Virus record (IMG/VR): IMGVR_UViG_3300009158_000031
Location: 124,001 to 188,000 of that record
DNA: 64,000 nt
Direction: 5' to 3' (one strand)
Made by a program: the position numbers and the translations under genes. Positions within the stretch are counted from its first letter, which is position 1, and each line of letters starts with the position of its first letter. The notes under the pieces were generated by a model. That model was not told the origin of the DNA and did no database searches. It saw only the letters and a list, made by a program, of their open reading frames with translations. Below are positions 4,909 through 62,957 of this stretch, one piece after another.

Positions 4909-7900
4909 ATGGCAATATCTCCTAGTCTACAACAATTCAAATCTTCAGGTGTTTACCGATTAGAATTCGACAAGAGTCAAATTACTAATATTCCATCTGA
5001 AACAATCCGTTTAATTATCGGATTCTCAAAAAAAGGACCTTTTAATACTCCTGTTCTTTGTAAAGACACCGTCTTCTTTAAAGAAATTTTTGGAGATATT
5101 GATACTTCTCTTGAAAGAAAAGGTTCGTTCTTCCATAGAACGGCTCTAGTTTCTCTTGATAGAGGTCCAGTTATTGTATTGAATCTTTTGAATCTTGACG
5201 ATACTCTAGATCAATCACAATTCCGCTCAATCTCTACTGCTTCTTGGCAAGCTAATTCAGCGGTTAAGTATGCTCCAGTATCAAATTATTTCAACCAAGA
5301 TAAATTCTGGTTCACTGATGCTCAAGCTCTTATTGACACTGCAGATAATTCTGATTATCAATCAGTTTTAGCTCAAAGATTACTTAACCTTGCAAATGTT
5401 GGTAGAAAAAACATGTCAGTTTTTACTAAAAAATCTACAACTTTAGGTTTCGATATTTTAGCTAAAGATTGGTACGGAACTGGTAAAGTTCCAGAATTCA
5501 TTAACGAAAATGATTACATCTCTGATTATATGGTAGATTTGATTATCGTTGAAGGTGACTTCTCTAATTATCAATCTCTTGCAATCGATCCAATTTATGG
5601 AACTTATTTCGATGCAACTGGTTTAAAAACTACTATCACTGATTCTTATGGAAATATTTTAGATGGTTTAACTGCATTCTTAAACTTAAATTCAGTTAAT
5701 GTACTAGGTGTTTATACTGGTTGTTTAATTCCAGAATTCCAAGATAAAAATGGTAATAACCTTTTCATTCAAGATCTAGTTAATCTAGAAACTTCTAAGA
5801 CTGGTTTGCTATTAGGAATTAATGTAGATACTATTGATGATGCTCCTGAAACTATTGGAAACGATTTAATTGACTTAATTGGTCATGGTATCGAATCTCA
5901 AGAACCTACAGTAGTAGACTTCCTTTCTTATTATGGTTCTATTGTTTCTGCAATGCCTTATGCCGGAGCTACCGGTATCGATACTCTTATCGTTGCTGGA
6001 ACTGCTGGTCAAACTGGTGCTCAGGCATTAATGATTGCTTCTGCTGGTTTAACTGGAGCTTCTGCTACAAACGGTTGGAAAACTACAACAGGTCATTATG
6101 ATACTTTATTGGTATATGGTCCTTCTGCTACTCTTCCCACTTCATTTGCATCTAAATTTGCTAACGAAACAGCATTCGCTACTTTCCGTACTGCCGTTTC
6201 AGTGGATAATACATTCATTAAAGCTGGTGCTTCAGCGAATACAACTGGTGCTTCAGGTAACTACTCTTATTTAGCTTCCGAATCTTATGATACTACAACT
6301 GATATCTTAACACTTAAGATCTCTAACGTTGCTGGTTCTGGTGTTACTGGTCCTACTTCAGTTGCTCAAGGTTATTATTACTTATACCCAGTTGGTTTAA
6401 CCGCTGGTGGTACTGCTTCATTACCGGTTATCCAATCAGTGAATTTCAATTTTGCTGAAGGTGGTAATTTGTTTACTGGTGTTGCAAATCAACTTTATCA
6501 AGATAATCTTTCTGGTATTTTAACTGATGGAGATAAAGTTAAAGTTAATAATGCAGGTGCTACTGCTACTGCTTATGCTGAATTTAACCGAGTATCTACT
6601 AATGACTTTAGTGGTGCTACATTTACTAACGCTAATGCTTTTGGTAATGAAGCTCCTATTCTAAATGCATTTACTAATTACATTGAAGTTAATGCTTATA
6701 CAAATCCTAACTTATCTACTGGAGCTACTGCAATTACTCCGCAAACTACTTATGTGGTAAATACTTTAACCGGTAATATCAACGAATCTTTCGCTCTATG
6801 GGGTGGAACTGCCTATACAAATCCTACTAACGTAGTTTGGGTAGATAATGGTTCTACTGGTCCTCTTGGATTAAATGGTTTCAATGGTCTAATCATTAAA
6901 AATCAATTATTGCTTCAGAACTTTGGCGGAACTGGTGGTGCTACATCTAACAGTCCTATTACTGGAAAATCAAGATTAACTCGCATCCTTTCAGTTGCTG
7001 AAATTACCGATCCTACATCTGATCTTTACAAAAAGATCAAGATTACTACAGTAGATCCCATCTTTATTTCTGCAACAAGTGAAATTGAAAGATATAAAGA
7101 GGCTTCTAATTTTGTTACTCACTACAGACCTTCTGCTCTTAGAGGTTATACTTTAAGAACTGGTCAAATGCCTGATGGTACTGATACTCGTCAAAATGAA
7201 ATTCTAGACGTTATGTATAACAGTAATATCGCGGCTGCTCTTGCTGATCGTGAAACTATTAGTTTCCGTTATATTATCGATTCATTCCAAGGAACAATCG
7301 AACCTTCAACGAAGATTCGTTTAACTAAACTTGCTAAGAATCGTCAATCTGCTTTAGCAATTGTCAATATGCCTTCAGTGAAACAATTTAAAGATAGTAC
7401 TAACCCTATATTCAAATTAACTTCATCTTCTCAATTCGATGCTGCTTATATTGCTGATGGTGGTAATCTATCAACAAATCCTTCAAACATATTCAGCTTA
7501 CCAGGTATTGCTGATGGTGGTAATTACTCCGCTTTCTATGGTCCTAACTTGACTATCAGAGAAGCCGGTAAAAACACTTCAGTTCCTCCTGCTGCTCATG
7601 TTGGTAACTTATACATTGACAAATACACTCAAGCCCTTCCTTATTCAATTATCGCTGGTCCTCGTAGAGGTGTGATAACAGGAACTGGTCTTGTAGGTGT
7701 TGAATACAATTTTGATAGAACCGATCTAGATTCAATTGAACCATTTGGTTACAATGCAATCGTTAACAAGAGAGGTTTTGGATTAACTATTAATGCCAAT
7801 CAAACTGCTCAACAAACTGTAAAATCTGCTCTTTCACAAATTCACGTAAGAGAGTTATTAATTTACATTCAAGATGGTATTGAGGCTATCCTTAAAAATT

Positions 7901-8160
7901 ACCGTTGGGAATTCAACAGTGCTAATAATCGTTTAGAAATTAAAACTTTAGCCGACAATTTCCTATCACAAATCCTTTCTGATGGTGGAGTTTACGACTT
8001 CCAAAACATTATGGATACAACTAACAATACGACTGAGATCATCGATAACAATTATGGAATCCTTGATACTTACATCGAACCTGTTAGAGGAATGGGTATC
8101 TTAGTTCACAGAACTACAATTCTAAGAACTGGTGCTATTTCAACTGGTAACTTTATTTAA
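4909..8160 (+). CDS. gp18: Tail sheath protein (T4 gp18-like) with a large Gly/Ala/Thr-rich central insertion
   Basis: N-terminal SGVYRLEFDKS and IIGFSKKGPFNTP; C-terminal SALSQIHVRELLIYI..WEFN and DFQNIMDTTNNT..IIDNN..IEPVRGM; 1083 aa. Confidence 0.95.
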   Translation: MAISPSLQQFKSSGVYRLEFDKSQITNIPSETIRLIIGFSKKGPFNTPVLCKDTVFFKEIFGDIDTSLERKGSFFHRTALVSLDRGPVIVLNLLNLDDTLDQSQFRSISTASWQANSAVKYAPVSNYFNQDKFWFTDAQALIDTADNSDYQSVLAQRLLNLANVGRKNMSVFTKKSTTLGFDILAKDWYGTGKVPEFINENDYISDYMVDLIIVEGDFSNYQSLAIDPIYGTYFDATGLKTTITDSYGNILDGLTAFLNLNSVNVLGVYTGCLIPEFQDKNGNNLFIQDLVNLETSKTGLLLGINVDTIDDAPETIGNDLIDLIGHGIESQEPTVVDFLSYYGSIVSAMPYAGATGIDTLIVAGTAGQTGAQALMIASAGLTGASATNGWKTTTGHYDTLLVYGPSATLPTSFASKFANETAFATFRTAVSVDNTFIKAGASANTTGASGNYSYLASESYDTTTDILTLKISNVAGSGVTGPTSVAQGYYYLYPVGLTAGGTASLPVIQSVNFNFAEGGNLFTGVANQLYQDNLSGILTDGDKVKVNNAGATATAYAEFNRVSTNDFSGATFTNANAFGNEAPILNAFTNYIEVNAYTNPNLSTGATAITPQTTYVVNTLTGNINESFALWGGTAYTNPTNVVWVDNGSTGPLGLNGFNGLIIKNQLLLQNFGGTGGATSNSPITGKSRLTRILSVAEITDPTSDLYKKIKITTVDPIFISATSEIERYKEASNFVTHYRPSALRGYTLRTGQMPDGTDTRQNEILDVMYNSNIAAALADRETISFRYIIDSFQGTIEPSTKIRLTKLAKNRQSALAIVNMPSVKQFKDSTNPIFKLTSSSQFDAAYIADGGNLSTNPSNIFSLPGIADGGNYSAFYGPNLTIREAGKNTSVPPAAHVGNLYIDKYTQALPYSIIAGPRRGVITGTGLVGVEYNFDRTDLDSIEPFGYNAIVNKRGFGLTINANQTAQQTVKSALSQIHVRELLIYIQDGIEAILKNYRWEFNSANNRLEIKTLADNFLSQILSDGGVYDFQNIMDTTNNTTEIIDNNYGILDTYIEPVRGMGILVHRTTILRTGAISTGNFI

Positions 8161-8196: not shown

Positions 8197-8254
8197 CAAT
8201 TCATTTACGAATCAGTAAGATAAATAATAAAATACACAAAAAAAGCAATATACA

Positions 8255-8809
8255 ATGCCAGGATTACCACATTTTCTAAACAGTAAAGCGGCTACTAAAT
8301 ACTACGAACCGTTTTATCAAAACTTGTTTGAGGTAAACATTCTTCCTCCTTCTACTATTTCTGGTGGAGAGATCTTGATTGAACACGTAAATAAAATCGG
8401 CGGTTTAACTCAAGATAGAGGTTCAGAAGCAACCACTCAATCATACAAATTCGCTAAGAGATCTTACGCAATGGGAACTCCTACAGATACCATTACAGAT
8501 TTAACAATCGGTTTCTCTCTTAACTTAAACGATGCAAACGAACTATACGTATATAAAACATTACGTGATTGGTTCCGTTTGATCTATAACCCACTTACTG
8601 GTGAACAAGGTTTGAAGAAAGATTATGTAGGTACTCTCGTTATTACAAACTATAATCGTGCCGGAGATATCTTCTGGCAACGTACTTTCCATGATTGTTT
8701 CCCTACTGGAGATATCGGTGAATTAGCTGCAGATTACTCAGGTGGTGAAAAAGTTGATATGCCAGACGTTAAATTTCGTTCTGATTGGTGGGAAGAGAAC
8801 ATCGTTTAA
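8255..8809 (+). CDS. gp19: Tail tube protein (T4 gp19-like)
   Basis: YKTLRDWFRLIYNPLTG..YVGTLVITNYNRAGDIFWQRTFHDCFP; 184 aa directly after the sheath. Confidence 0.9.
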   Translation: MPGLPHFLNSKAATKYYEPFYQNLFEVNILPPSTISGGEILIEHVNKIGGLTQDRGSEATTQSYKFAKRSYAMGTPTDTITDLTIGFSLNLNDANELYVYKTLRDWFRLIYNPLTGEQGLKKDYVGTLVITNYNRAGDIFWQRTFHDCFPTGDIGELAADYSGGEKVDMPDVKFRSDWWEENIV

Positions 8810-8830
8810 TTTCAATCTATTAAGACTTTT

Positions 8831-8861
8831 AAAGAGAACTTCGAAAGAGGTTCTCTTTTGT
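8831..8861 (+). terminator. Rho-independent terminator after tail tube
   Basis: aaagagaacttc-GAAA-gaggttctcttt followed by tgtt. Confidence 0.75.
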
Positions 8862-8918
8862 TGTATATTCATATAAGTAAGAGATAAATATAATAACGAA
8901 AAAAAATTATATTTAAAA

Positions 8919-9182
8919 ATGGGTGAAACGTCGGTTGTTGGTATAATTTTAGCACTAATCGGTATATTTAAAGGAAAAGACATATGGGAATTCTTTAAAC
9001 ATCGAGCTACTATTAAAAGTAAAACTAATGACAAGGTCATTGAGATTTATGAAAAACAACTAAATACTTGCGAAACTAAAGTTCAGCTTTTAGAAACAAA
9101 AAATGATAAATTGTCTAAGAGATTTGAAACTAAATTGAAGAGTCGAGGAAAAACCAAAGAAGAACCTCTTAAAAAAGATTAA
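8919..9182 (+). CDS. Small membrane protein with coiled coil (holin/spanin-like, unassigned)
   Basis: N-terminal hydrophobic helix VVGIILALIGIF, then a heptad-rich C-terminus. Confidence 0.35.
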   Translation: MGETSVVGIILALIGIFKGKDIWEFFKHRATIKSKTNDKVIEIYEKQLNTCETKVQLLETKNDKLSKRFETKLKSRGKTKEEPLKKD

Positions 9183-9185
9183 AAT

Positions 9186-9449
9186 ATGAAAAACTACATA
9201 AACACATTTGAAGAGTTCTTAAATGAATCAATTAACGAAAATGTTTGGGCAGATATAACTAAATCAGCAAAACCTACTAAAGGTCCTTGGACTCTAGTAT
9301 CATCTGATAATAAAAAAGTTTTAGCCCAGAGCACAACTGATAATATACACATGCTTCCTGCTCATTTTGAATCACTGAAACTAAAATTTCCAAAATCAAG
9401 TATTCATATAGAAAGTGCTTCCGGTGAAGTAATTTGGAAAATGAAATAA
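9186..9449 (+). CDS. Putative internal head protein with capsid-targeting sequence (CTS 1)
   Basis: Starts MKNYINTFEEFLNESINE; compare the T4 IPII/IPIII CTS MKTYQEFIAE. Confidence 0.65.
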   Translation: MKNYINTFEEFLNESINENVWADITKSAKPTKGPWTLVSSDNKKVLAQSTTDNIHMLPAHFESLKLKFPKSSIHIESASGEVIWKMK

Positions 9450-9454
9450 TCAAT

Positions 9455-9910
9455 ATGAAAAATTACATAAACACATTTGAAGGTTTCTTAAATGAAGTTC
9501 GATTAAATGAAGATAAAATGCCGGTAGTTTCGGACTTTAAAGCTAACCCAACCGTATTGGATGGTGTTAAAATTAAAAACCTAGCCGAAGAAAATCCTGA
9601 ACAGGTGTTCATTATAAAGAAGGAATATGGCAAATGGCCTGATGATATACTTGCTAAATACAGCAAAACAGAAACTTCGATAACTGAATTTCTACCAATC
9701 GATAAATATGCTACAATGACAAAGTTAGAGTACTTAGGTTCTATGGCTGAAGTTATTGATATGATGTTCGGAGCTGACGAATGGCCACCAGCTAAACAGA
9801 AAGAACTTGCAAATGAACCATACTTATCTACTAATAAACAAGGAGAAGTTATAATAGATGTTCAACGAGGAAATATCAGTAAGTTTGTAAAATTAGCAGA
9901 AAAAAAGTAA
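9455..9910 (+). CDS. Putative internal head protein (CTS 2)
   Basis: True start is ATG 9455: MKNYINTFEGFLNEVRLNE. Confidence 0.65.
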   Translation: MKNYINTFEGFLNEVRLNEDKMPVVSDFKANPTVLDGVKIKNLAEENPEQVFIIKKEYGKWPDDILAKYSKTETSITEFLPIDKYATMTKLEYLGSMAEVIDMMFGADEWPPAKQKELANEPYLSTNKQGEVIIDVQRGNISKFVKLAEKK

Positions 9911-9920
9911 TTTAACTAAT

Positions 9921-10526
9921 ATGAAAAATTACATAAACACATTTGAAGGCTTCTTAAATGAATCTAAATACAAAGGAAATATCTCAGGAGATTCTGCTGA
10001 ATATATTGCTAAAGAAATGTCACAATATGTTAAAGGCATAATTAAACAGCCTAATGATAATGTTACTTACTTCCATTTAAAAGATAAATCCGGCAAATCA
10101 AAAGTTATTAAAACCTTATTAGATGTTTATGGATTAGAAGCAGTAGATGGTGGAAATCAATTTTCTCCATCACCTACTATTAAATTTGATAACGATCAAC
10201 TTCTTGAATCCCTTAGATCAGGTCCTAATGATGCTAAAATATATCCCATTAAAAAAGGAAGTGATCCAGAAGATCTTCTTTCCGGTAGATCTAGAGGATC
10301 ATGGGTAAGTTCAAAAACCATTAATGATATATTAGACGTTTTTGGTAAGGAAATGACCATTTATAAAGGTGACGAAATCACAGAATTCCTTCAAGTTAAT
10401 AGCCGAGATAATAGTGACATATATAAAATAGTTAGACGAGATTTAAGAGGACCTAGAACGGTTGGTTATATCCCTTCATATTATCAGAATTTTGACCAAA
10501 CCGAAGAAATAAACAATACTCGTTAA
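9921..10526 (+). CDS. Putative internal head protein (CTS 3)
   Basis: MKNYINTFEGFLNES; a possible second internal site at QLLES. Confidence 0.65.
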   Translation: MKNYINTFEGFLNESKYKGNISGDSAEYIAKEMSQYVKGIIKQPNDNVTYFHLKDKSGKSKVIKTLLDVYGLEAVDGGNQFSPSPTIKFDNDQLLESLRSGPNDAKIYPIKKGSDPEDLLSGRSRGSWVSSKTINDILDVFGKEMTIYKGDEITEFLQVNSRDNSDIYKIVRRDLRGPRTVGYIPSYYQNFDQTEEINNTR

Positions 10527-10527
10527 T

Positions 10528-11010
10528 ATGAAAAACCACATAAACACATTTGAAGGATTCTTAAATGAAGCTCGATTAAATGAAAGCAAACCTGCTATGA
10601 TGTACTATGTAGTAGCCAAGGATGTCATTAAGGATAGAAGACTTAAAGTATATCCTGAAAACATCGAAAGACTTTTGAACAACTTACAAGCAGACGGACA
10701 TTTATCATATGATGCAACGATAACATCAGATGCAAAGAAAGATATTGAAAACGCATTAGATAAGTTAGACTTGAAAGGGAATGAATTGCTTTCATATGCA
10801 AGAAAAGGCATGAAGTACGAAAGTGAAGATGTTAATGAAGCCAATCAAATTAAAGTTGGAACTTTTGTTAGATACAAAAAAGACGAAGATTTTACTGGTG
10901 GTAAGATCAAATCTATAAGTTCTGGTAAAGCAGAAATACATAATTGGGATGGTTCAACAACAGAACTTCCACTTAAAGATCTTGAATATATTGAGTCTTG
11001 GAATAATTAA
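10528..11010 (+). CDS. Putative internal head protein, two modules (CTS 4)
   Basis: MKNHINTFEGFLNEARLNE; internal EDVNE followed by a small SH3/Tudor-like beta module (IKVGTFVRY..GKIKSI..AEIHNWDG). Confidence 0.65.
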   Translation: MKNHINTFEGFLNEARLNESKPAMMYYVVAKDVIKDRRLKVYPENIERLLNNLQADGHLSYDATITSDAKKDIENALDKLDLKGNELLSYARKGMKYESEDVNEANQIKVGTFVRYKKDEDFTGGKIKSISSGKAEIHNWDGSTTELPLKDLEYIESWNN

Positions 11011-11013
11011 AAT

Positions 11014-11421
11014 ATGAAACCTATCAAACTATATAAAGAGTTTATTAATGAGGCAAAAGACGTTGATTCGGCAATGAAGAAAATCGATGATTTGCCAAAA
11101 GGATCAACCTTTGAAGATGCCAAAAGAATAGATCGTATTTTTGATATCAGTAAACATAGTTGGAGTGAGGTTGTGGAAACTTTTGAAAAGAATCAAAAAT
11201 CCGCAAAGATTAAACCGATAAATATAAAAGACATACAAATAACTCAACCAAATATCCAGAGCAATAAAGTGAAAGCCATGATTGAGAAATTTGATAAATT
11301 ACCTACAATTAATGCAGTTCAATTTCCGGATGGAATATCCATATATGATGGACATCATCGTCTATTAACTGCTTGGTCAATAGGAGAAACACGAATCAAA
11401 GTTAATCTTGTAAAAATATGA
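11014..11421 (+). CDS. CTS-bearing ParB/Sulfiredoxin-fold protein (CTS 5)
   Basis: MKPIKLYKEFINE, then INIKDIQITQPNI and IYDGHHRLLTA (ParB/Srx DGxHR motif). Confidence 0.7.
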   Translation: MKPIKLYKEFINEAKDVDSAMKKIDDLPKGSTFEDAKRIDRIFDISKHSWSEVVETFEKNQKSAKIKPINIKDIQITQPNIQSNKVKAMIEKFDKLPTINAVQFPDGISIYDGHHRLLTAWSIGETRIKVNLVKI

Positions 11422-11648
11422 AACACCTACACACATACAAAGAGTTCTTATTCGAGTCAACGATTTCCGAAATGAAGATAACTTCAGTTGGCGTTAAAGA
11501 GATTCTTAAGAAGCTTTATGACGATGCTAAACTTACAAAAGCATTACATTTTAAAAACTTCCGAGATGCACTCGATTCTATTCTTGGATATAGTCAAACG
11601 GAATTAGAAGAATTAGAAACAGAGATAAAAGAACTAGAGCACGCTTAA
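11418..11648 (+). CDS. Putative internal head protein (CTS 6)
   Basis: MKHLHTYKEFLFESTISE. Confidence 0.6.
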   Translation: MKHLHTYKEFLFESTISEMKITSVGVKEILKKLYDDAKLTKALHFKNFRDALDSILGYSQTELEELETEIKELEHA

Positions 11649-11670
11649 GATAATTTAAAAAATAAAAAAC

Positions 11671-12501
11671 ATGAAACATACACAAACATTCAAAGAGTTC
11701 TTAAATGAACAAGAAGAGATACTTAATGAAGATAGTTCTCTTGCACTTATGGTAATACTGCAAGCGGCTATAGTTAATGGACTTCTAATAGGTCAAATGG
11801 CGGCTAGTGGTGGTGGAGATGGCTTTCATCCTATCGATGATTTAAAAGCTTGGTGGGCGAAACGTAAAAAAGATAAAGCTGTAAAAAGTATTGTTGATAA
11901 ATTAAAAGAAGATCCTGAAGTTTTAGCCTTTTTGAAAATGTCAAATTGGGCACAAAAAGGAAAATGGTATAAACTTATTGAACCTAAACTTAATGACGAA
12001 GAGAAAAAATATCTAAAAAGTATTTCAAGAACTCCATTTATGAATGAGGAAGTTAATGAAAATTCCGCAATCCTTCTTGATCTTTCTGATAAGCAGTTGG
12101 CACTTTCTATAAAGGCTAAATTACCAGCCAAGTATAAAAAAGATACGAAGACTTTAATATACAATGCTCCATATTCAATGGTTTCTCATGGTGCTAAACT
12201 TACAAACCTTCCAACTCCTTCACGAGTATATCAATTGGAAAAAATGAATGAAACTTATAGAGGATCTGATAATTGGATATCTTTATCTTCATTAGCTATT
12301 GTACAAGATACAACCAATCAAGTTACTTTTGTAATTGTATATGAAGAATTTGATCCAATTCAATTTGATGAAATAAAATCAAATAAAGATTTGTACAAAG
12401 AAGAGGATTATAAAGACGAAAAAGATTTGCTTAAAAAGATGCAAACTTGGTTTGCTTATTCTGAAAAGGTCTTTAAAGAAGTAATAGAAGATCACTCATA
12501 A
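11671..12501 (+). CDS. Putative internal head protein, two modules (CTS 7)
   Basis: MKHTQTFKEFLNEQEEILNE; hydrophobic segment LALMVILQAAIVNGLLIG; internal FMNEEVNE linker. Confidence 0.6.
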   Translation: MKHTQTFKEFLNEQEEILNEDSSLALMVILQAAIVNGLLIGQMAASGGGDGFHPIDDLKAWWAKRKKDKAVKSIVDKLKEDPEVLAFLKMSNWAQKGKWYKLIEPKLNDEEKKYLKSISRTPFMNEEVNENSAILLDLSDKQLALSIKAKLPAKYKKDTKTLIYNAPYSMVSHGAKLTNLPTPSRVYQLEKMNETYRGSDNWISLSSLAIVQDTTNQVTFVIVYEEFDPIQFDEIKSNKDLYKEEDYKDEKDLLKKMQTWFAYSEKVFKEVIEDHS

Positions 12502-12512
12502 AAAAACATAAT

Positions 12513-12989
12513 ATGAAACATATACTCACATTCAAAAACTTCTTAAACGAGGAAAGAGTTTATGGAATGTTCAATGATTCTCAAGGAAAACCATCTAAAC
12601 TTTCACAAGAGATTTTAGATATTTGTCTAAAAGCACTACCTAAATATGTAATAGATAATATTGAATCAGTTGAAGCTTCCGGTTATTCTAAGACAAATTT
12701 AGCATCACCTCCTACGGTTAGTAATAAAGGTCAATCAAGAGGTGAAAATGATTATACGACTATTGTTCTAATATTCAAAAATCCAATGGGAAAATCTAAA
12801 ACAACTGAATTGACGGTTGGATTAAGAAAAAGAACTTCTGGACCAGGAACTGGTTATCTTGCGGTTAAACCTACTGCAAATGGTCATTATGTTTTACCTG
12901 AACATAGTGCCGCAATTGAATTTTATGATGCAGCGCCTGAAAGTTTAGCGGATTTATATAAGAGTACACTAGAAAAATTAATGAAATAA
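12513..12989 (+). CDS. Putative internal head protein (CTS 8)
   Basis: MKHILTFKNFLNEE. Confidence 0.65.
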   Translation: MKHILTFKNFLNEERVYGMFNDSQGKPSKLSQEILDICLKALPKYVIDNIESVEASGYSKTNLASPPTVSNKGQSRGENDYTTIVLIFKNPMGKSKTTELTVGLRKRTSGPGTGYLAVKPTANGHYVLPEHSAAIEFYDAAPESLADLYKSTLEKLMK

Positions 12990-12990
12990 T

Positions 12991-13353
12991 ATGAAACATA
13001 TACCAACATTCGATAATTTCCTAAATGAAGGAACCATCATGATTTTTCACTACTCAAAGAAATCTTCAGAGATTGATGGTGACGTGAAAGAATTACAGAA
13101 GAAAGCTCAAGAATTTATTAAAATCGCAAGAGACAAAGATTACAATATATCTTCTAACGATTCCGTACTTTATTTTCCAAATTTTAAATGGGCAGGAGGT
13201 AAACAAATCTTTGGACCATCATTAGGTATTAAAGCAGGATCAGAAACAATGCTAATTAATCCAATAGGCTCTGATAAAATAATCAAGATTAGCGAAGGCT
13301 TGCTTGTTCGTTTTGTAAAAGACGGCAGAATCGAATCATATAATTTATACTAA
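12991..13353 (+). CDS. Putative internal head protein (CTS 9)
   Basis: MKHIPTFDNFLNEG. Confidence 0.65.
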   Translation: MKHIPTFDNFLNEGTIMIFHYSKKSSEIDGDVKELQKKAQEFIKIARDKDYNISSNDSVLYFPNFKWAGGKQIFGPSLGIKAGSETMLINPIGSDKIIKISEGLLVRFVKDGRIESYNLY

Positions 13354-13354
13354 T

Positions 13355-13603
13355 ATGAAACATATACTCACATTCAAAAACTTCTTAAATGAAGGATTCA
13401 AGAAACCTTATAGCGAAAAAATGAGCCTTGAGGATTTTTCTGCTATAGAAGTTGGAAGTGAGGTTCTTTATGCTGGAGCAACTTACGAAGTGGTTAACAA
13501 CGATGGTGCAACTCTTCAATTAAAACCGGCTAAAGGTGCTAATGGTAAAGCGACTAAAGTTAATTTCTCAATGTTTAATGTTGCTGGAGCAATCCGCGAT
13601 TAG
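13355..13603 (+). CDS. Putative internal head protein (CTS 10)
   Basis: MKHILTFKNFLNEG; SH3-like cargo (IEVGSEVLYAGATYEVV). Confidence 0.65.
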   Translation: MKHILTFKNFLNEGFKKPYSEKMSLEDFSAIEVGSEVLYAGATYEVVNNDGATLQLKPAKGANGKATKVNFSMFNVAGAIRD

Positions 13604-13688
13604 TTGAATCTTCATAAATTTCAAATCATATAATTAAAATTATAAGTCTAAGGATATGATCTGCTTATAGTAAAAAATATCATATGTT

Positions 13689-15050
13689 TTGAAATTAAGA
13701 CAAGGGTTATTATTCCTAAAATCTCTACACACAAGATCTAAATCCGATGAAGAAGTTCTTCAATGGATAGAATCTAGACGATCATTAGTTAAGCACACGA
13801 TTCAACAAATCGATCTTAATAAGCTAAATGGTTGGAATTTCTACGATCATAAGATAGAACATACTTCTGGTAAATTTTATCAGATTCATATTAGACGCAA
13901 TGAGTTAGATGGAAGGATTTGGGATCAACCAATAATCAATCAACCCGAAATTGGTATTCTTGGATTTATTACCAAACAAATCGATGACGTACTTCATTTT
14001 CTAGTTCAAGCTAAAATTGAACCAGGAAATATCAATATCGTTCAGTTATCACCAACCGTACAATCAACTAAAAGTAATTTCACTAAAGTTCATGGTGGTG
14101 CATTAACACCCTTTGTAGAATATTTCTTAAAAGGAGAATCTAGAATTTTAGTAGATCAACTACAATCCGAACAATCTAGTAGGTTCTTTCAAAAACGTAA
14201 TCGCAATATTATTATAGAAGTTGAAGATGAGTTATCTCATGAAAATTATTTATGGATGACTCTTGGAGATCTTGTTGCATTAACTAGATATCCTAATACT
14301 GTCAATATGGATAGTCGAACCGTTTTAAGTTGTATTCACTTTGGTTCATATTCATTTGAACATCTAGAACTAAGAGATTTTCTTGGTGGAATTTCACATG
14401 ATTCTGCTTGGATAGATTCACTACTTCGTAAAGATGTATATCAAAAATCCCATCCAGAAATTCTTTCATTAATTACCGATCTTAAATTTAGAAGAGAAGC
14501 TTTGACTAGGTTAATTTATCTTTCAGAATCACATGATTGGAATTTGATTGATGGTAAGATTGTTCATAAAGATGAAAAATATTTTGATGTAGTAGGTTAT
14601 CGAATATTTATTGAAAATCGAGAATCCGCTCAATGGGATCAACCTTTAATCCGACCTAAATCTACTGGAATATGTTGTTTCTTTGCTCGTAAATTTGAAG
14701 GAGTATTTCACTTACTAGTTCAGCTAAAAGATGAGATTGGATCTTTTGATGGTGTTGAAATGGCACCAACTATTCAAATGTCTGAAGAGAATTTAGATCT
14801 ATCGCCTTTCTTTGAATCGTATCAAAGACTAATAAATACAGATTCGGTTTTATTTGATGTTATGCAATCCGAAGAAGGAGGAAGATTTTATCAAGAACAA
14901 AACCGAAATATTATCATAGAAGTTAATGAAGAACTGGAACTTCCAAGAAATTATATTTGGATGACTCTTAATCAACTTAAAACATTCTTACAATATAACA
15001 ATTACGTAAATATTCAAACACGTTCAATTATGTCATCTTTACCTCTATGA
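13689..15050 (+). CDS. NDP-hexose 2,3-dehydratase (EvaA/SpnO/TylX3 family), TTG start
   Basis: Two-repeat architecture: WDQPIINQPEIGILGF..LVQAKIEPGN..QLSPTVQST..QSEQSSRFFQKRNRN, then WDQPLI..LLVQ..EMAPTIQ..QSEEGGRFYQEQNRN. Confidence 0.92.
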   Translation: MKLRQGLLFLKSLHTRSKSDEEVLQWIESRRSLVKHTIQQIDLNKLNGWNFYDHKIEHTSGKFYQIHIRRNELDGRIWDQPIINQPEIGILGFITKQIDDVLHFLVQAKIEPGNINIVQLSPTVQSTKSNFTKVHGGALTPFVEYFLKGESRILVDQLQSEQSSRFFQKRNRNIIIEVEDELSHENYLWMTLGDLVALTRYPNTVNMDSRTVLSCIHFGSYSFEHLELRDFLGGISHDSAWIDSLLRKDVYQKSHPEILSLITDLKFRREALTRLIYLSESHDWNLIDGKIVHKDEKYFDVVGYRIFIENRESAQWDQPLIRPKSTGICCFFARKFEGVFHLLVQLKDEIGSFDGVEMAPTIQMSEENLDLSPFFESYQRLINTDSVLFDVMQSEEGGRFYQEQNRNIIIEVNEELELPRNYIWMTLNQLKTFLQYNNYVNIQTRSIMSSLPL

Positions 15051-16000
15051 AAGTAGCTATTCTAAATTGTTCAGATATTGCAAAACGAAGAATGATTCCG
15101 GCATTTCAGGCAATACCTGAAGTTGAAGTTTCTATCGTATGTAGCCGAGATATTCGTAGAGCTAAACAATATGCTGAAGAATTTGGAATCCCAAAATATA
15201 CGGATAATCCAGATGAAATTATTGGAGTTGATCTAGTTTATATTTCATCTCCTCCATCTGAACATTTTGATGCGATTAAAACATTTATAAAGAGAAAAAT
15301 TAATATTCTTTGCGAAAAATCTCTTACCATAGATGCATATCAAACAACCTATCTAATTAATCTAGCCGATAAACAAGGAGTTCTTATACAAGAAAATTAT
15401 GGATTTCCTTTTCATACTCAGTGGAAATGGATAAAAGAAAACCTAAATAAAATAGGAGATCTTCTTTACATAAGAAGTGGATTTGAATTTCCTCCAAGAA
15501 ATACCGAAACAGATTTTCGTTACAAATCTGCTCTCGGTGGTGGTGCTCTTTTCGATGCCGGTGGATATCCTATTAAATTAGCCTCTTTATTATTGGGAAC
15601 TCCTCAAAAACTTGATGCAGTTACTCATATATCAAAATCACTTGATATTGATCTTTCTGGAAGAACATTTATTATTGATGAAACTGGAAAATCTGCATTT
15701 TTAACTTGGAGTTTTGAATCTACTTATCGTTGTGATGTAGAAATTGTAGGAACTCAAGGAACAATTAAAGCTGGTAAGATATTTACTCCTAGAATTGATG
15801 AACATGTTGAAGTGTCAATTTCACTTATTGGAGAGCCGGTAGAAAGACAACAATTTGTTTGCGATCATTTCGTTGAACTTATTCGAGATTTTATAAATAG
15901 AATAAAGATTAAAGATAACTCTCATCATAAAAGTATATTAAAACAATCAAAATGGCAAACATATGTATCGTCTACTAGTATCAGAACCTTCACTAACTAA
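15047..16000 (+). CDS. Gfo/Idh/MocA oxidoreductase, likely NDP-sugar 3-ketoreductase (SpnN/KijD10-like)
   Basis: CSDIAKRRMIPA, ILCEKSL, GGGALFDAGGYP; coupled to the 2,3-dehydratase by an ATGA overlap. Confidence 0.82.
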   Translation: MKVAILNCSDIAKRRMIPAFQAIPEVEVSIVCSRDIRRAKQYAEEFGIPKYTDNPDEIIGVDLVYISSPPSEHFDAIKTFIKRKINILCEKSLTIDAYQTTYLINLADKQGVLIQENYGFPFHTQWKWIKENLNKIGDLLYIRSGFEFPPRNTETDFRYKSALGGGALFDAGGYPIKLASLLLGTPQKLDAVTHISKSLDIDLSGRTFIIDETGKSAFLTWSFESTYRCDVEIVGTQGTIKAGKIFTPRIDEHVEVSISLIGEPVERQQFVCDHFVELIRDFINRIKIKDNSHHKSILKQSKWQTYVSSTSIRTFTN

Positions 16001-17045
16001 CTTCGAAGAATTTGCAAATATTGCAAAAGAAGTTTGGGCAAGTGGAATCCTAACGCACAATGGACCTAAGGTCAAAGAACTCGAACATCGGTTAAAAGAA
16101 CAATGGCAGATACCTCATCTATCATTAGTTACAAATGGAACTATTGCACTTGAAGTTGCAATGAGAGCTCTAGAACTTCCTAAAGGAAGTGAAATTATTA
16201 CAACTCCATTTACCTGGATTGCAACTGCATCAGCTATTCAATGGCAAGATTATGAACCTATTTTTGTTGACGTTGATCCAAATACTCTTAATATAGATCC
16301 GGCTAAAATTGAAGAAAAAATAACAGATAGAACATCTGCTATTTTAGCGGTTCATGTATTCTCGAATCCATGTGATGTAGATTCTATTCAAGAAATTGCA
16401 GATCGTCGAGGTCTACGAGTTATTTATGATGGTGCTCATGCAGTTGGTGTAAAATATAAAGGAGTAGATCTTTCTCAATTCGGTGATATTACAACTCATT
16501 CATATCATGCAACTAAAATTTATAATAGTGGAGAAGGTGGATCGATTATTACTAGAAATCCAGAGTTAGCTAAAAGAATTGATCGTCTTCGCTTCTTTGG
16601 ACATAATGAAAAGAAAGATATTGTACATGAAGGAACTAATGCTAAAATGCATGAAATCTCTGCTGCAATTGGATTAGCTAATTTAAAAATGTTACCTAAA
16701 ACAATTATGCATAGAAAACTTTTAACTCTTATGTATAAACATAGAATGGAAGGTTTACCGGTTAGATATCAAGCAATCAGCAACGACTCTTATAATTTTT
16801 CATATTTCCCCATCATATTTGAAACAGAAGAACAATGTCTTAAAGTGTATGCGGCATTAGATGCTATTAAAATTATGCCTCGTAGATATTTCTATCCATC
16901 AGTTAACGAATTCAAAATCTTTGATCCTCAATCATGTCCTATTAGCGAAGATATTTCTAGACGAATTCTTTGTCTACCATGTCACGATGGTGTGAAGCTT
17001 ATGGATGTCGATGAAATCTCACACACAATAATCAAAACTTTCTAA
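15963..17045 (+). CDS. vioA: DegT/DnrJ/EryC1 PLP aminotransferase, VioA-like sugar 4-aminotransferase
   Basis: VTNGTIAL, IYDGAHA, SYHATKIYNSGEGG (catalytic Lys retained), GTNAKMHEISAAIGL, RRYFYP. Confidence 0.85.
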   Translation: MYRLLVSEPSLTNFEEFANIAKEVWASGILTHNGPKVKELEHRLKEQWQIPHLSLVTNGTIALEVAMRALELPKGSEIITTPFTWIATASAIQWQDYEPIFVDVDPNTLNIDPAKIEEKITDRTSAILAVHVFSNPCDVDSIQEIADRRGLRVIYDGAHAVGVKYKGVDLSQFGDITTHSYHATKIYNSGEGGSIITRNPELAKRIDRLRFFGHNEKKDIVHEGTNAKMHEISAAIGLANLKMLPKTIMHRKLLTLMYKHRMEGLPVRYQAISNDSYNFSYFPIIFETEEQCLKVYAALDAIKIMPRRYFYPSVNEFKIFDPQSCPISEDISRRILCLPCHDGVKLMDVDEISHTIIKTF

Positions 17046-61433: not shown

Positions 61434-62957
61434 ATGAAACCTATTAAAAACTACAACGAATTCATTAATGAAGCATGGATTGGTCCATTCGTATTCAATG
61501 AAGACATGACCGATGATGAACTAAAGGCTATATACCAAGGTGCATTAGATGGATTTGCTTATTGGCAAAAAGGATTTGAATATCCAAAAGCCGATTACAA
61601 AAAGGCATATACTGAAATTGGAAAGATTCTAAAGAAAAGAGGAGTTAATGTTGATGAATCTGTTAATGAAGGATCTAACGACGAAATGGTAAAACGGAGT
61701 TGTGTCGAAAGACTTTCTCAATTCTTTAGAGTTAGTCCAAACGCATTATCACATTTCAAATTTGATGGAACCGATAACATTAAAGCTTTAACAAAAGCTC
61801 TTAATTCTACATCAGATGAAGGAACCGAGGCATACTATAAAGTAGCAATCCGAGTTGGAAAACAAGATGCCGGTATCGAAGAATCTATCGAGGAATCAGC
61901 TAAATGTCCTCCTATATACATTCCGGTATTATCTAATATCGATCATACTAGAATAATCAAATGGATGGATATTCATTTTGATAGTCATAAATGGGATATG
62001 AAGAAATCCGGTGCTGGTTTTGAAATCGATGTTGAAAAACTATCTAGTCAAGAACAAGATGATTTATTAAAATATTTACACTCACAAGATTATTTAGAAG
62101 AATCTGTTAATGAAGCTTGGAGTAATATAGACACCGACAAAGCTGCCGATCTAATCAATAAAGAAATTGGAGTTAATCCTGGTTATTTCTTTATTGGCGA
62201 TGAAGATTTATGCATCAAATTTGATAAATTATGGACTGAAAAGAAATACAAAGTAGCTCTTAATATGTTATTTTTTATTGAAAATCTAAAAGATCTTAAA
62301 GACTTCATAAAACAAAACCAAAACGAATCGGTTAATGAAGCAGTATCACCAGAAGTACATCGTATGGTTAATAAATTTGTAACCGGTATGGCTGATAAAT
62401 ATGATTATTCTTTACAAGATGCAGTTTATGCAATACTAGACGTTTTAAAAAGTCAAAAATATAAAGGATTAAAAGAATCTGTTAATGAAGGTGAAACTTT
62501 AATATTTGATGAGATCGGAGAAAACCTAACCAAACTTCAGGATCAAATAGATGCAATGCTTAAATGGGAAATCACCGATCAAAAATGGATCGTTGCACTT
62601 AAAACAATTCAATCTGCCTGTTCTAAATTGGAAGATACTGTCGCTAAAGCTGATCAGAAATTAGGTGCTATTGAATATAATGAATCCATTAGTGAAGGTC
62701 TTTTAAAATTAGATGAAGGTGCTGTTAAACAATTTGAGATCGATTATAAAGACATGGAAAGTAGTATCAAACGAGGTATTGGTTGGATTGATCCTGAATA
62801 TGTGGCTGAAACTTGGGAGAATTCTTCAGATACTATTGATTATGAAATAGTTAGAAATGAAATTCTTACTCGTCTAATTAAAGCCGATCTTCTTTATACA
62901 TCACTAGATGGAGAAACTAAAGGTAAAAGAATTACCAACATAAGTCAAATTAAATAA
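61434..62957 (+). CDS. CTS-bearing multi-module polyprotein with ES(V/I)(N/E/S)E linkers
   Basis: True start ATG 61434: MKPIKNYNEFINE; linkers DESVNE, EESIEE, EESVNE, NESVNE, KESVNE, NESISE. Confidence 0.75.
   Translation: MKPIKNYNEFINEAWIGPFVFNEDMTDDELKAIYQGALDGFAYWQKGFEYPKADYKKAYTEIGKILKKRGVNVDESVNEGSNDEMVKRSCVERLSQFFRVSPNALSHFKFDGTDNIKALTKALNSTSDEGTEAYYKVAIRVGKQDAGIEESIEESAKCPPIYIPVLSNIDHTRIIKWMDIHFDSHKWDMKKSGAGFEIDVEKLSSQEQDDLLKYLHSQDYLEESVNEAWSNIDTDKAADLINKEIGVNPGYFFIGDEDLCIKFDKLWTEKKYKVALNMLFFIENLKDLKDFIKQNQNESVNEAVSPEVHRMVNKFVTGMADKYDYSLQDAVYAILDVLKSQKYKGLKESVNEGETLIFDEIGENLTKLQDQIDAMLKWEITDQKWIVALKTIQSACSKLEDTVAKADQKLGAIEYNESISEGLLKLDEGAVKQFEIDYKDMESSIKRGIGWIDPEYVAETWENSSDTIDYEIVRNEILTRLIKADLLYTSLDGETKGKRITNISQIK
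61656..62490 (+). repeat. 16-bp linker repeats gaatc(t/g)gttaatgaag at 61656, 62100, 62325 and 62475
   Basis: Three identical copies and one with a single substitution; degenerate copies at 61881 and 62682. Confidence 0.92.

Follow-up and report, generated by a model that had tools for sequence, protein, structure and literature searches.

In phage T4, the first ten residues of the internal proteins (IPs), MKTYQEFIAE, constitute the capsid-targeting sequence (CTS) (PMC8442874), of which residues 4 and 7 serve targeting and residues 8 and 10 serve processing by gp21, which cleaves after L/I-x-E (PMC9026906). Of the T4 IPs, each of Ip1-3 inhibits a GmrSD restriction enzyme of its own (PMC12373910). 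According to the account of Repoila et al. (1994) that is given in Arbiol et al. (2010), the promoter/stem-loop repeats around T-even IP genes may drive shuffling. Here, we describe a locus of ten leader-bearing genes in a 64,000-nucleotide stretch of DNA (positions 124,001 to 188,000 of the IMG/VR virus record IMGVR_UViG_3300009158_000031; hereafter the window). The locus is likely to be an array of internal proteins with CTS-type leaders, where the DNA of leaders and leader-like linkers would serve as recombination joint.

The array resembles the T-even IP loci in its short propeptide with aromatic residues three apart and an L/I-x-E end, in the presence of a gp21-type protease and a gp23-type capsid protein, and in its unrelated cargo, with gene number, order and identity varying between close relatives. 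It differs in belonging to a 254-kb jumbo phage, in having a leader of 13-14 residues instead of 10, and in comprising a ten-gene array, with 21 such genes in the genome; moreover, many of its cargo proteins are multi-module polyproteins, and the cargo is without IP family match. The handle proposed for T-even loci consists of promoter/stem-loop repeats, whereas here the handle would be the coding leader. For the promoter-early stem-loop (PeSL) cassettes of T4-type phages (PMC2839356, PMC4122927), Arbiol et al. (2010) reported repeat-bounded exchanges as well as mini-circles and drew the analogy with integrons. As in the array, closely related phages differ at these cassettes by insertions, deletions and replacements with short conserved repeats at their borders, and no dedicated recombinase is known; PeSLs are, however, intergenic regulatory elements, while in the array the genes are -4 to 22 nt apart and there is no promoter and stem-loop repeat per open reading frame (ORF).

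In the phiKZ-like giant phages, with their ejection and inner-body proteins, many head proteins carry propeptides that are cut after Glu by a gp21-related protease (gp175 in phiKZ, gp245 in SPN3US); their propeptides have several cleavage sites, and paralogues may share an identical N-terminus with a diverged remainder. In these phages the motif is S/A-x-E and propeptides are often longer than 100 residues, in contrast to [LIV]-N-E and 13-14 residues here, and the phiKZ-like literature consulted for comparison describes no leader-bounded cassette array or polyprotein module exchange. The initial annotation of the window, made from its letters without database searches, had likened the locus to an integron. 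This holds as an analogy, in that promoter-less cassettes of unrelated genes in one orientation are gained and lost as units between repeats, but not in mechanism: the 254-kb record (83% complete) gave no match to the tyrosine integrase family PF00589, which was matched in 14 of 14 control genomes, and an inverted-repeat search revealed no recurrent attC-like repeat at the gene borders. Different from integrons, the repeat belongs to the coding sequence, with which each gene begins, and exchange is probably homologous and not site-specific. In the polymorphic toxin loci of bacteria, such as contact-dependent inhibition (CDI) and Rhs loci, a conserved coding motif also borders a constant delivery part and variable cargo and supplies the homology for swaps; there, the motifs are others, a single C-terminal toxin is accompanied by an immunity gene, and no prohead protease is involved.

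Array Organisation

Ten abutting ORFs on the + strand fill positions 9186-13603 of the window (Table 1), each opening with a leader of the form MK..[IL]..[TL][FY]..F[LI]NE and a length of 13-14 residues. The leaders of genes 1-4 read MKN[YH]INTFE[EG]FLNE, that of gene 7 reads MKHTQTFKEFLNE, and genes 8 and 10 have the leader MKHILTFKNFLNE in common; together, the leaders account for ~9% of the array length. The majority of the junctions between the genes have the form TAA(N)ATG. Promoter-like sites in the array amount to 22 compared with 26.8 expected and are thus not in excess, the strong terminator-like hairpins all lie upstream of the array, and three weak ones (11561-11575, 12441-12455) are located inside genes. 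Given the narrow intergenic gaps and the lack of a promoter or terminator excess, no other repeat is available in the array.

At the DNA level, the exact repeat 12509-12547/13351-13389 has a length of 39 bp, is not extendable and consists of TAAT and the 35 nt with which genes 8 and 10 begin. The 42-bp copies at 9186, 9455, 9921 and 10528 show 0-3 mismatches to one reference and a pairwise identity of 92-97%, and 100 dinucleotide shuffles of the window produced 0 matches to this leader repeat. Both sets of repeats are as the initial annotation had described them, including the 4 nt 5' of the start codon in the 39-bp pair. Its extent of the locus, which ended at 13389, had to be revised, since the array comprises ten leader genes and ends at 13603, with eleven more such genes elsewhere, and the T-even setting it had drawn on did not hold, the phage being a distant jumbo phage with a T4-type head.

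Table 1. Coordinates of the array genes, of the features bordering the variable interval and of a further leader-bearing gene (window positions).
Feature	Position	Strand	Leader	Further sites and remarks
Gene 1, 87 aa	9186-9449	+	9186-9227 (MKNYINTFEEFLNE)	Second INE site 9231-9239
Gene 2, 151 aa	9455-9910	+	9455-9496	Second LNE site 9503-9511
Gene 3, 201 aa	9921-10526	+	9921-9962	N-terminal module, LLE linker 10200-10208, C-terminal module
Gene 4, 160 aa	10528-11010	+	10528-10569	Second LNE 10576-10584; VNE linker 10831-10839, then C-terminal module
Gene 5, 135 aa	11014-11421	+	11014-11052 (MKPIKLYKEFINE)	Cargo with ParB-N/sulfiredoxin fold, DGHHR motif
Gene 6, 76 aa	11418-11648	+	11418-11456 (MKHLHTYKEFLFE)	Start overlaps gene 5 stop by 4 nt
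Gene 7, 276 aa, two-module polyprotein	11671-12501	+	11671-11709	Second LNE 11722-11730; module A (hydrophobic segment), linker FMNEEVNE 12040-12060, module B
Gene 8, 158 aa	12513-12989	+	12513-12551 (MKHILTFKNFLNE)	5' copy of 39-bp repeat (12509-12547)
Gene 9, 120 aa	12991-13353	+	12991-13029 (MKHIPTFDNFLNE)	
Gene 10, 82 aa	13355-13603	+	13355-13393	3' copy of 39-bp repeat (13351-13389)
Terminator-like hairpin 3' of tail tube gene (8255-8809)	8831-8858	+		Upstream edge of variable interval
Small 87-aa protein, hydrophobic N-terminus	8919-9182	+	None	Heads variable interval
NDP-hexose 2,3-dehydratase gene	13689-15050	+		Conserved downstream anchor of variable interval; outside array
Leader-bearing ORF, 507 aa from MKPIKNYNEFINE	61434-62957	+		Five internal [LIV]NE-type sites; no Pfam family

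Arrangements and Joints in Related Phages

Megablast of positions 8200-14000 against the GenBank phage collection gave no match, and relatives were reached through proteins and IMG/VR: the tail tube protein as query retrieved 73 IMG/VR loci, and a gene 7 homologue (P0041) led to the European Nucleotide Archive (ENA) contig L087. Among phages with collinear flanks of 86-100% identity, at least six haplotypes with four to ten leader genes each were found. Flank DNA identity to the window was 93-95% for L003/L004, 86% for L005-7 and 87-89% for L087, with small gaps only over 4-9 kb. Between tail tube and dehydratase gene the window has 4883 bp, whereas L005-7 have 1556 bp, L027 has 1437 bp, L017/L022 have 1155 bp and L032 has 994 bp; in L087 this interval has ~4.2 kb and its content differs from that of the window. 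Relatives with ~80% tube identity have no array at this site. The contigs X4 and X6, from further lake metagenomes, add two arrangements among near-identical phages, X4 being composed of L003-like genes 3 and 4 joined to a window-like gene 5. A metagenome scan with the 87-aa protein encoded ahead of gene 1 returned the window, L004 and three distant phages and revealed no new close haplotype.

Changes at the joints are stated relative to the window arrangement, and no direction of insertion or deletion is assigned to them. In X6, a joint from 9194 to 9464 drops one leader-plus-cargo unit (269 nt, gene 1), with 19 nt shared, and leaves a hybrid of leaders 1 and 2. Similarly, the gene 9 unit (364 nt) is missing from L005-7, where a single 42-nt leader aligns to both leaders 9 and 10, its 5' half being leader 9-like and its 3' half leader 10-like. 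Additional sequence stands right behind a leader in two places. An additional domain of ~426 nt follows leader 1 in L003/L004, with a 10-nt repeat (TAAATGAATC), and an additional in-frame domain of 329 nt follows leader 5 in L003, with a 16-nt repeat (AAGAGTTTATTAATGA); the latter insertion is shared by X6, and L004 ends before its distal joint. The 10- and 16-nt repeats flanking the L003 insertions are copies of the leader 3' end.

Genes 3 and 4 are changed within the ORF. Both L003 and X4 are devoid of the N-terminal module of gene 3, with the leader TGAATC joined to the same hexamer after the internal LLE; L003 does not have 9965-10204 (240 nt), and the X4 joint from 9958 to 10205 skips 246 nt with 6 nt shared. 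In L003, X4 and X6, leader 4 and the N-terminal module of gene 4 (~299 nt) have given way to 41-47 nt with the code for a degenerate leader, which again ends in LNE, and the right side is shared from the second LNE onward. In L087, gene 7 module A is fused to the gene 8 cargo, and the 479 nt with module B, the stop codon and leader 8 are missing; the overlap at this fusion is 28 nt (FMNEE versus FLNEE). The place of gene 9 is occupied in L087 by two other leader genes between conserved leaders, and X4 and X6 contain extra sequence between two leader copies at gene 10. As for the remaining genes, a gene 2 orthologue was found in L003/L004, gene 6 is missing from L005 and L087, and the gene 10 cargo is conserved in both of these.

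In total, the DNA shared at the joints measures 6-42 nt, with hybrid leaders, and the scored boundaries lie within a leader, at the 3' end of one, or at a linker resembling a leader. The two exceptions are the outer left edge of the interval, in the spacer near 8900, and the 5' edge of the segment replaced in gene 4, immediately behind the start codon. The proposal of the initial annotation that the leader is a recombination handle is supported by this comparison of relatives, where gene order varies, insertions and deletions are repeat-bounded, and presence/absence variants with breakpoints in or at the leaders occur in X6 (gene 1), L005 (gene 9), L003 and L087.

Leaders and Modules in Different Combinations

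Leaders and cargo differ in their relationships. Between window and L005, the cargo of gene 5 has 82% DNA identity and the leaders have 46%, the L005 gene having a GTG start. Leader 8 is 58% identical to its L005 orthologue versus 94% to leader 10 of its own genome, and the orthologous gene 8 cargo bears other leaders in L005 and L087. All four of four L005 leaders belong to the HIPTF type, and window leaders 1-4 to the NYINTF type. Judged from these sequences, the mismatch between leader and cargo is the pattern that concerted evolution or leader replacement would give.

Gene 7 has 63 homologues, which divide the protein into two modules at FMNEEVNE. Module B stands alone behind three different leader classes, and the fusion partners of module A are cargo 8, a cargo 10 relative and other modules; four-module proteins consist of a cargo 1 relative, an SH3-like piece, module A and another piece. 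Since some of the linkers are truncated leaders, such as PTFESFVNE and NFLNE, internal linkers derive from leaders. When homology boundaries were counted only with five or more supporting protein pairs, 36 of 48 were within 8 residues of [LIVMF][NTS]E versus 17% for positions taken at random, although relatedness among the proteins means that the counts lack independence. A cruder count (45 of 110 boundaries near the motif) was discarded, as it was inflated by split alignments.

Homology and Selection at the Joints

Of the 11-13 codons for the same residue in leaders 1-4, 10-12 are identical, compared with ~6.3-7.4 expected from genome codon usage. The identity at synonymous positions that the initial annotation had pointed out thus exceeds the codon-usage expectation, but part of it is explained by a leader codon preference that is genome-wide: all 21 leaders of the genome favour ACA (14/14; genome frequency 0.28), TTC (19/21; 0.39) and ATA (12/18; 0.26). 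This preference, far from genome usage, extends to diverged and scattered leaders, and a strict DNA pattern of the leader was again matched in 44 stretches of large IMG/VR contigs. In view of the preference and these recurrences, identity alone is no proof of gene conversion, and the comparative data carry the argument.

The same two observations speak for the main rival explanation, in which the joints are placed by selection and not by homology: illegitimate recombination would strike at any site, survival would be limited to products with whole modules, an intact reading frame and a cleavage site, and leader identity would arise from a nucleotide constraint on translation start that has no role in exchange. 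The conserved AATATGAAA start context, in genes without Shine-Dalgarno-like spacers, also suggests a constrained initiation region, and some joints have as few as 6-10 nt in common. We regard this explanation as unlikely, because several other joints lie inside 16-42 nt of identity and leave hybrid leaders. Further, leaders 8 and 10 share rare codons (CTC 4%, AAC 21%) together with a residue combination absent from every other leader, while their orthologues differ. Nor is the constraint strict: three of the four L005 leaders use TTT at -4, which means that the codon at this position is not obligatory, and the Gly/Glu codon at leader position 10 varies freely among leaders 1-4.

Besides the codon preference, several points weigh against an array of packaged proteins with leader DNA as the joint. 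The joints sharing 6-10 nt only fit microhomology plus selection equally well, and selection by itself would likewise retain boundaries at module edges. The DNA of the leader subtypes is 30-50% different, which restricts the pairs that can recombine, and in the gene 5 family ~115 of 120 homologues retain their own IK[LI][FY] leader subtype, implying that leader exchange is not frequent everywhere. The structural comparison rests on assembled contigs, and it is from sequence features that we infer packaging and cleavage of the array proteins. Weighing the joints with long shared stretches and hybrid leaders, we infer that homology rather than selection places the joints.

The Leader as a Putative Capsid-Targeting Propeptide

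The 254-kb genome contains 21 leader-bearing ORFs, ten in the array and eleven elsewhere, and the pattern MK...[FY]..F[LIV].E is found at the start of all of them. The leaders match the layout of the T4 CTS, [FY]-x-x-F-[LI]-x-E, plus three or four extra residues after MK, and YKEFINE of gene 5 is close to YQEFIAE of T4. In many array genes, a second [LI]NE is situated four to seven residues beyond the leader, resembling the redundant cleavage sites reported for giant-phage propeptides.

Matching head machinery was found in the genome. A match to Peptidase_S77 (PF03420; 50.7 bits, cut-off 27) at genome 101739-102092 lies at the start of a 633-aa protease-scaffold ORF, which directly follows a 458-aa ORF, tentatively portal-like, and a match to the Gp23 family (PF07068; 124 bits) at genome 103938-105239 belongs to a capsid protein that begins with MYLINE and implies a prohead core assembled as in T4. 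In the protease-scaffold ORF (genome 101682-103583; L079 1444-3345), the protease domain is joined to a long C-terminal part that is acidic, contains many repeats and L/I/V-x-E sites and has a scaffold-like look; the MYLINE capsid protein comes next. Because of the sequence pattern and the presence of this machinery, we conclude that the leader is, by prediction, a CTS-type propeptide.

It is rather improbable that the leader signals something else, namely another compartment, another partner or a regulatory peptide. In its favour, the array cargo has no match to the described IP families, which weighs little, as IPs are defined by their leader and not by their cargo. Apart from the T4 CTS spacing with its terminal L/I-x-E and the gp21- and gp23-type genes, such a signal is at odds with the internal linkers of the same motif at module borders and with gene location: the leader ORF at genome 97953 precedes the portal-like ORF by ~1.5 kb, and the array comes after the tail tube gene in the same orientation.

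Outside the array, the degenerate leader pattern also matches at window position 61434. The listed ORF for this gene begins 34 codons earlier (61332), overlapping the preceding gene; going by its internal sites, the ORF from 61434 (Table 1) is a candidate multi-module polyprotein of the same system. Outside the window, a second cluster of six leader genes is located at genome 217410-223450, and four scattered leader genes are found at genome 13664, 69416, 97953 and 112546.

Cargo Proteins

After removal of the leaders, an all-against-all comparison of the array proteins with phmmer --max revealed no significant pair within the array (best E 0.09), in agreement with the lack of cargo similarity that the initial annotation had stated. 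For nine of the ten array proteins there was no match in Pfam and PHROG families, and almost no matches were obtained when the cargo of the window, L003 and L087 was searched against Pfam and PHROGs. The cargo of gene 5 gave weak ParB-like family matches only. Its AlphaFold2 model has a mean predicted local distance difference test (pLDDT) score of 88.6, with leader residues 1-14 disordered ahead of a confident fold, and the structural matches were sulfiredoxin/ParB-N folds only. A search of the ESM Atlas with gene 8 yielded no usable lead. In analogy with T4 Ip1-3, the function of the array cargo is probably host takeover or anti-defence.

Two cargo proteins of relatives have conspicuous residue patterns without Pfam match. 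A 243-aa cargo of L087 (L087 5750-6481) holds HEVGVH, a possible zinc-protease motif, and the module inserted in gene 5 of L003 (L003 6776-7104) shows a Cys...His...Asp pattern and might be a papain-like hydrolase.

The tandem, co-oriented arrangement and the common N-terminus of the array genes would also be obtained by plain duplication and divergence, with one gene duplicated ten times and the leader held by purifying selection, and duplicates do exist. One true paralogue pair was detected elsewhere in the genome (ORFs at genome 69416 and 222842; E 2e-25). In a different phage group, L084 has two tandem diverged copies of a 184-aa leader gene (10559-11670), of which L083 and L085 have one (L085 10569-11123), constituting a leader-bounded duplication. 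For the array, this origin is very unlikely: selection at the peptide level does not keep synonymous sites, yet these are alike while cargo similarity is nil; orthologous cargo occurs with non-orthologous leaders, and a single module is seen with three leader classes and with changing fusion partners; the cargo is also of different length and predicted fold, gene 5 having the ParB/sulfiredoxin fold.

Assembly and Rejected Joints

That repeats of 39-47 bp, near assembler k-mer sizes, misled the assemblers and rendered the haplotypes chimeric is the least probable explanation and hardly credible, as the window arrangement recurs unchanged in L001, L002 and L081, L003 agrees with L004, L005, L006 and L007 agree with one another across three samples, L087 has a coverage of 72x, the variants contain novel in-frame sequence beyond re-joined pieces, and the X6 joint with its 19 nt is below the k of 31 with which the Logan contigs were presumably built.

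One joint is best read as such an artefact. The 269-nt contig X3 joins the end of gene 9 (13221-13350) to leader 8 and the gene 8 cargo (12509-12647) with 39 nt shared. This back-joint (13350 to 12509) has the form expected of an 842-bp circle or of a tandem duplication of genes 8-9, but that interpretation was set aside, because the 39-nt repeat is longer than the assumed k, the depth is ~3x, and both "correct" edges are without cover, so that a graph artefact can account for it. The joint from 9227 to 11667 in X8 was likewise set aside, one side measuring only 26 nt in a contig that is 85% alike and derives from a more distant relative.

Phage Identity and Neighbouring Genes

The window is part of a viral record of 254,393 bp with 33% GC that is 83% complete. 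Terminase, tail sheath and tail tube genes are located 5' of the array. The sheath (window 4909-8160) is unusually long, with 1083 aa, and only its C-terminal third matches common sheath families; it is closest to those of uncultured huge phages (43% identity), Tenacibaculum phage PTm1 and Lak phages, for which reason the phage is not a T-even. The sequencing runs containing the region are freshwater and lake metagenomes from ~20 studies. Overall, the phage can be classed as a jumbo myophage of freshwater whose head module is of T4 type and which is distant from the T-evens. Its host is, tentatively, a probable member of the Bacteroidota, to which the sheath relatives and the missing Shine-Dalgarno spacing point. 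All translations were sufficiently served by genetic code table 11.

At the upstream border, window homology to L005 and L087 ends near 8900-8904. The leaderless 87-aa protein (Table 1) is variable: L005-7 do not have it, and L087 has a leader gene starting with GTG in its place. Copies with 78% identity are present in unrelated contexts in L083-L085, beside leader-type genes (MKAKKFKQFVTE, MQMLKFTQFVNE). Directly 3' of the array, positions 13689-17045 encode the NDP-hexose 2,3-dehydratase, a GFO/IDH/MocA oxidoreductase and a DegT-type aminotransferase. These deoxy-amino-sugar pathway genes are conserved in L005, L017, L027 and L087 and could have a role in DNA or surface glycan modification.

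Proposed Mechanism and Significance

We propose that the array encodes internal proteins that are packaged in the capsid and probably injected. The propeptide of 13-14 residues, [FY]-x-x-F-[LI]-N-E, most likely brings the protein into the prohead core and would then most likely be removed after Glu by the gp21-type S77 prohead protease. The cargo is made up of unrelated small modules, each with its own gene and leader or fused in frame via a leader remnant or an [LIVM]-N-E linker, and proteolysis would yield the same mature pieces from separate or fused modules. Rearrangements at linkers would be tolerated because the protease would cut after every linker, so that a module works alone or fused.

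Recombination over short homology between leader and linker repeats would be unequal within one genome or reciprocal between co-infecting relatives. A RecA/UvsX-family recombinase gene is present in the phage, and its product is the probable agent by which modules would be deleted, inserted, replaced or fused and neighbouring leaders homogenised; selection would retain in-frame, cleavable products. Injection, the recombination pathway and the cargo function are put forward as presumptive parts of this scheme.

More tentatively, and with somewhat less than even confidence, the locus may be viewed as a "beads on a string" effector system, in which the codons for targeting and cleavage form a universal joint, fusion and fission are nearly neutral because the prohead protease trims all products to identical mature pieces, and the injected proteins make up an open combinatorial library for a group of freshwater T4-type jumbo phages. 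If true, this would exceed the descriptions of T-even IP loci, whose proposed handles are intergenic. A full-text search on capsid targeting, prohead protease, jumbo phage, metagenome and propeptide returned SPN3US papers only. The distant freshwater jumbo setting, the scale (ten genes in the array, 21 in the genome), the coding-leader handle and the polyprotein architecture appear to be new.

The locus suggests that the capsid-targeting principle of T4 extends well past the T-evens, to uncultured freshwater jumbo phages. With injected internal proteins a phage first meets the defences of its host, and a delivery tag that doubles as recombination joint and cleavage site would let modules be exchanged or fused at little cost and this arsenal turn over fast. 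As a consequence, there would be a simple sequence rule by which packaged or injected proteins can be recognised in phages from metagenomes, a large reservoir of uncharacterised candidate anti-defence modules, and a natural template for bringing several cargo proteins into a capsid in the form of a single cleavable polyprotein.

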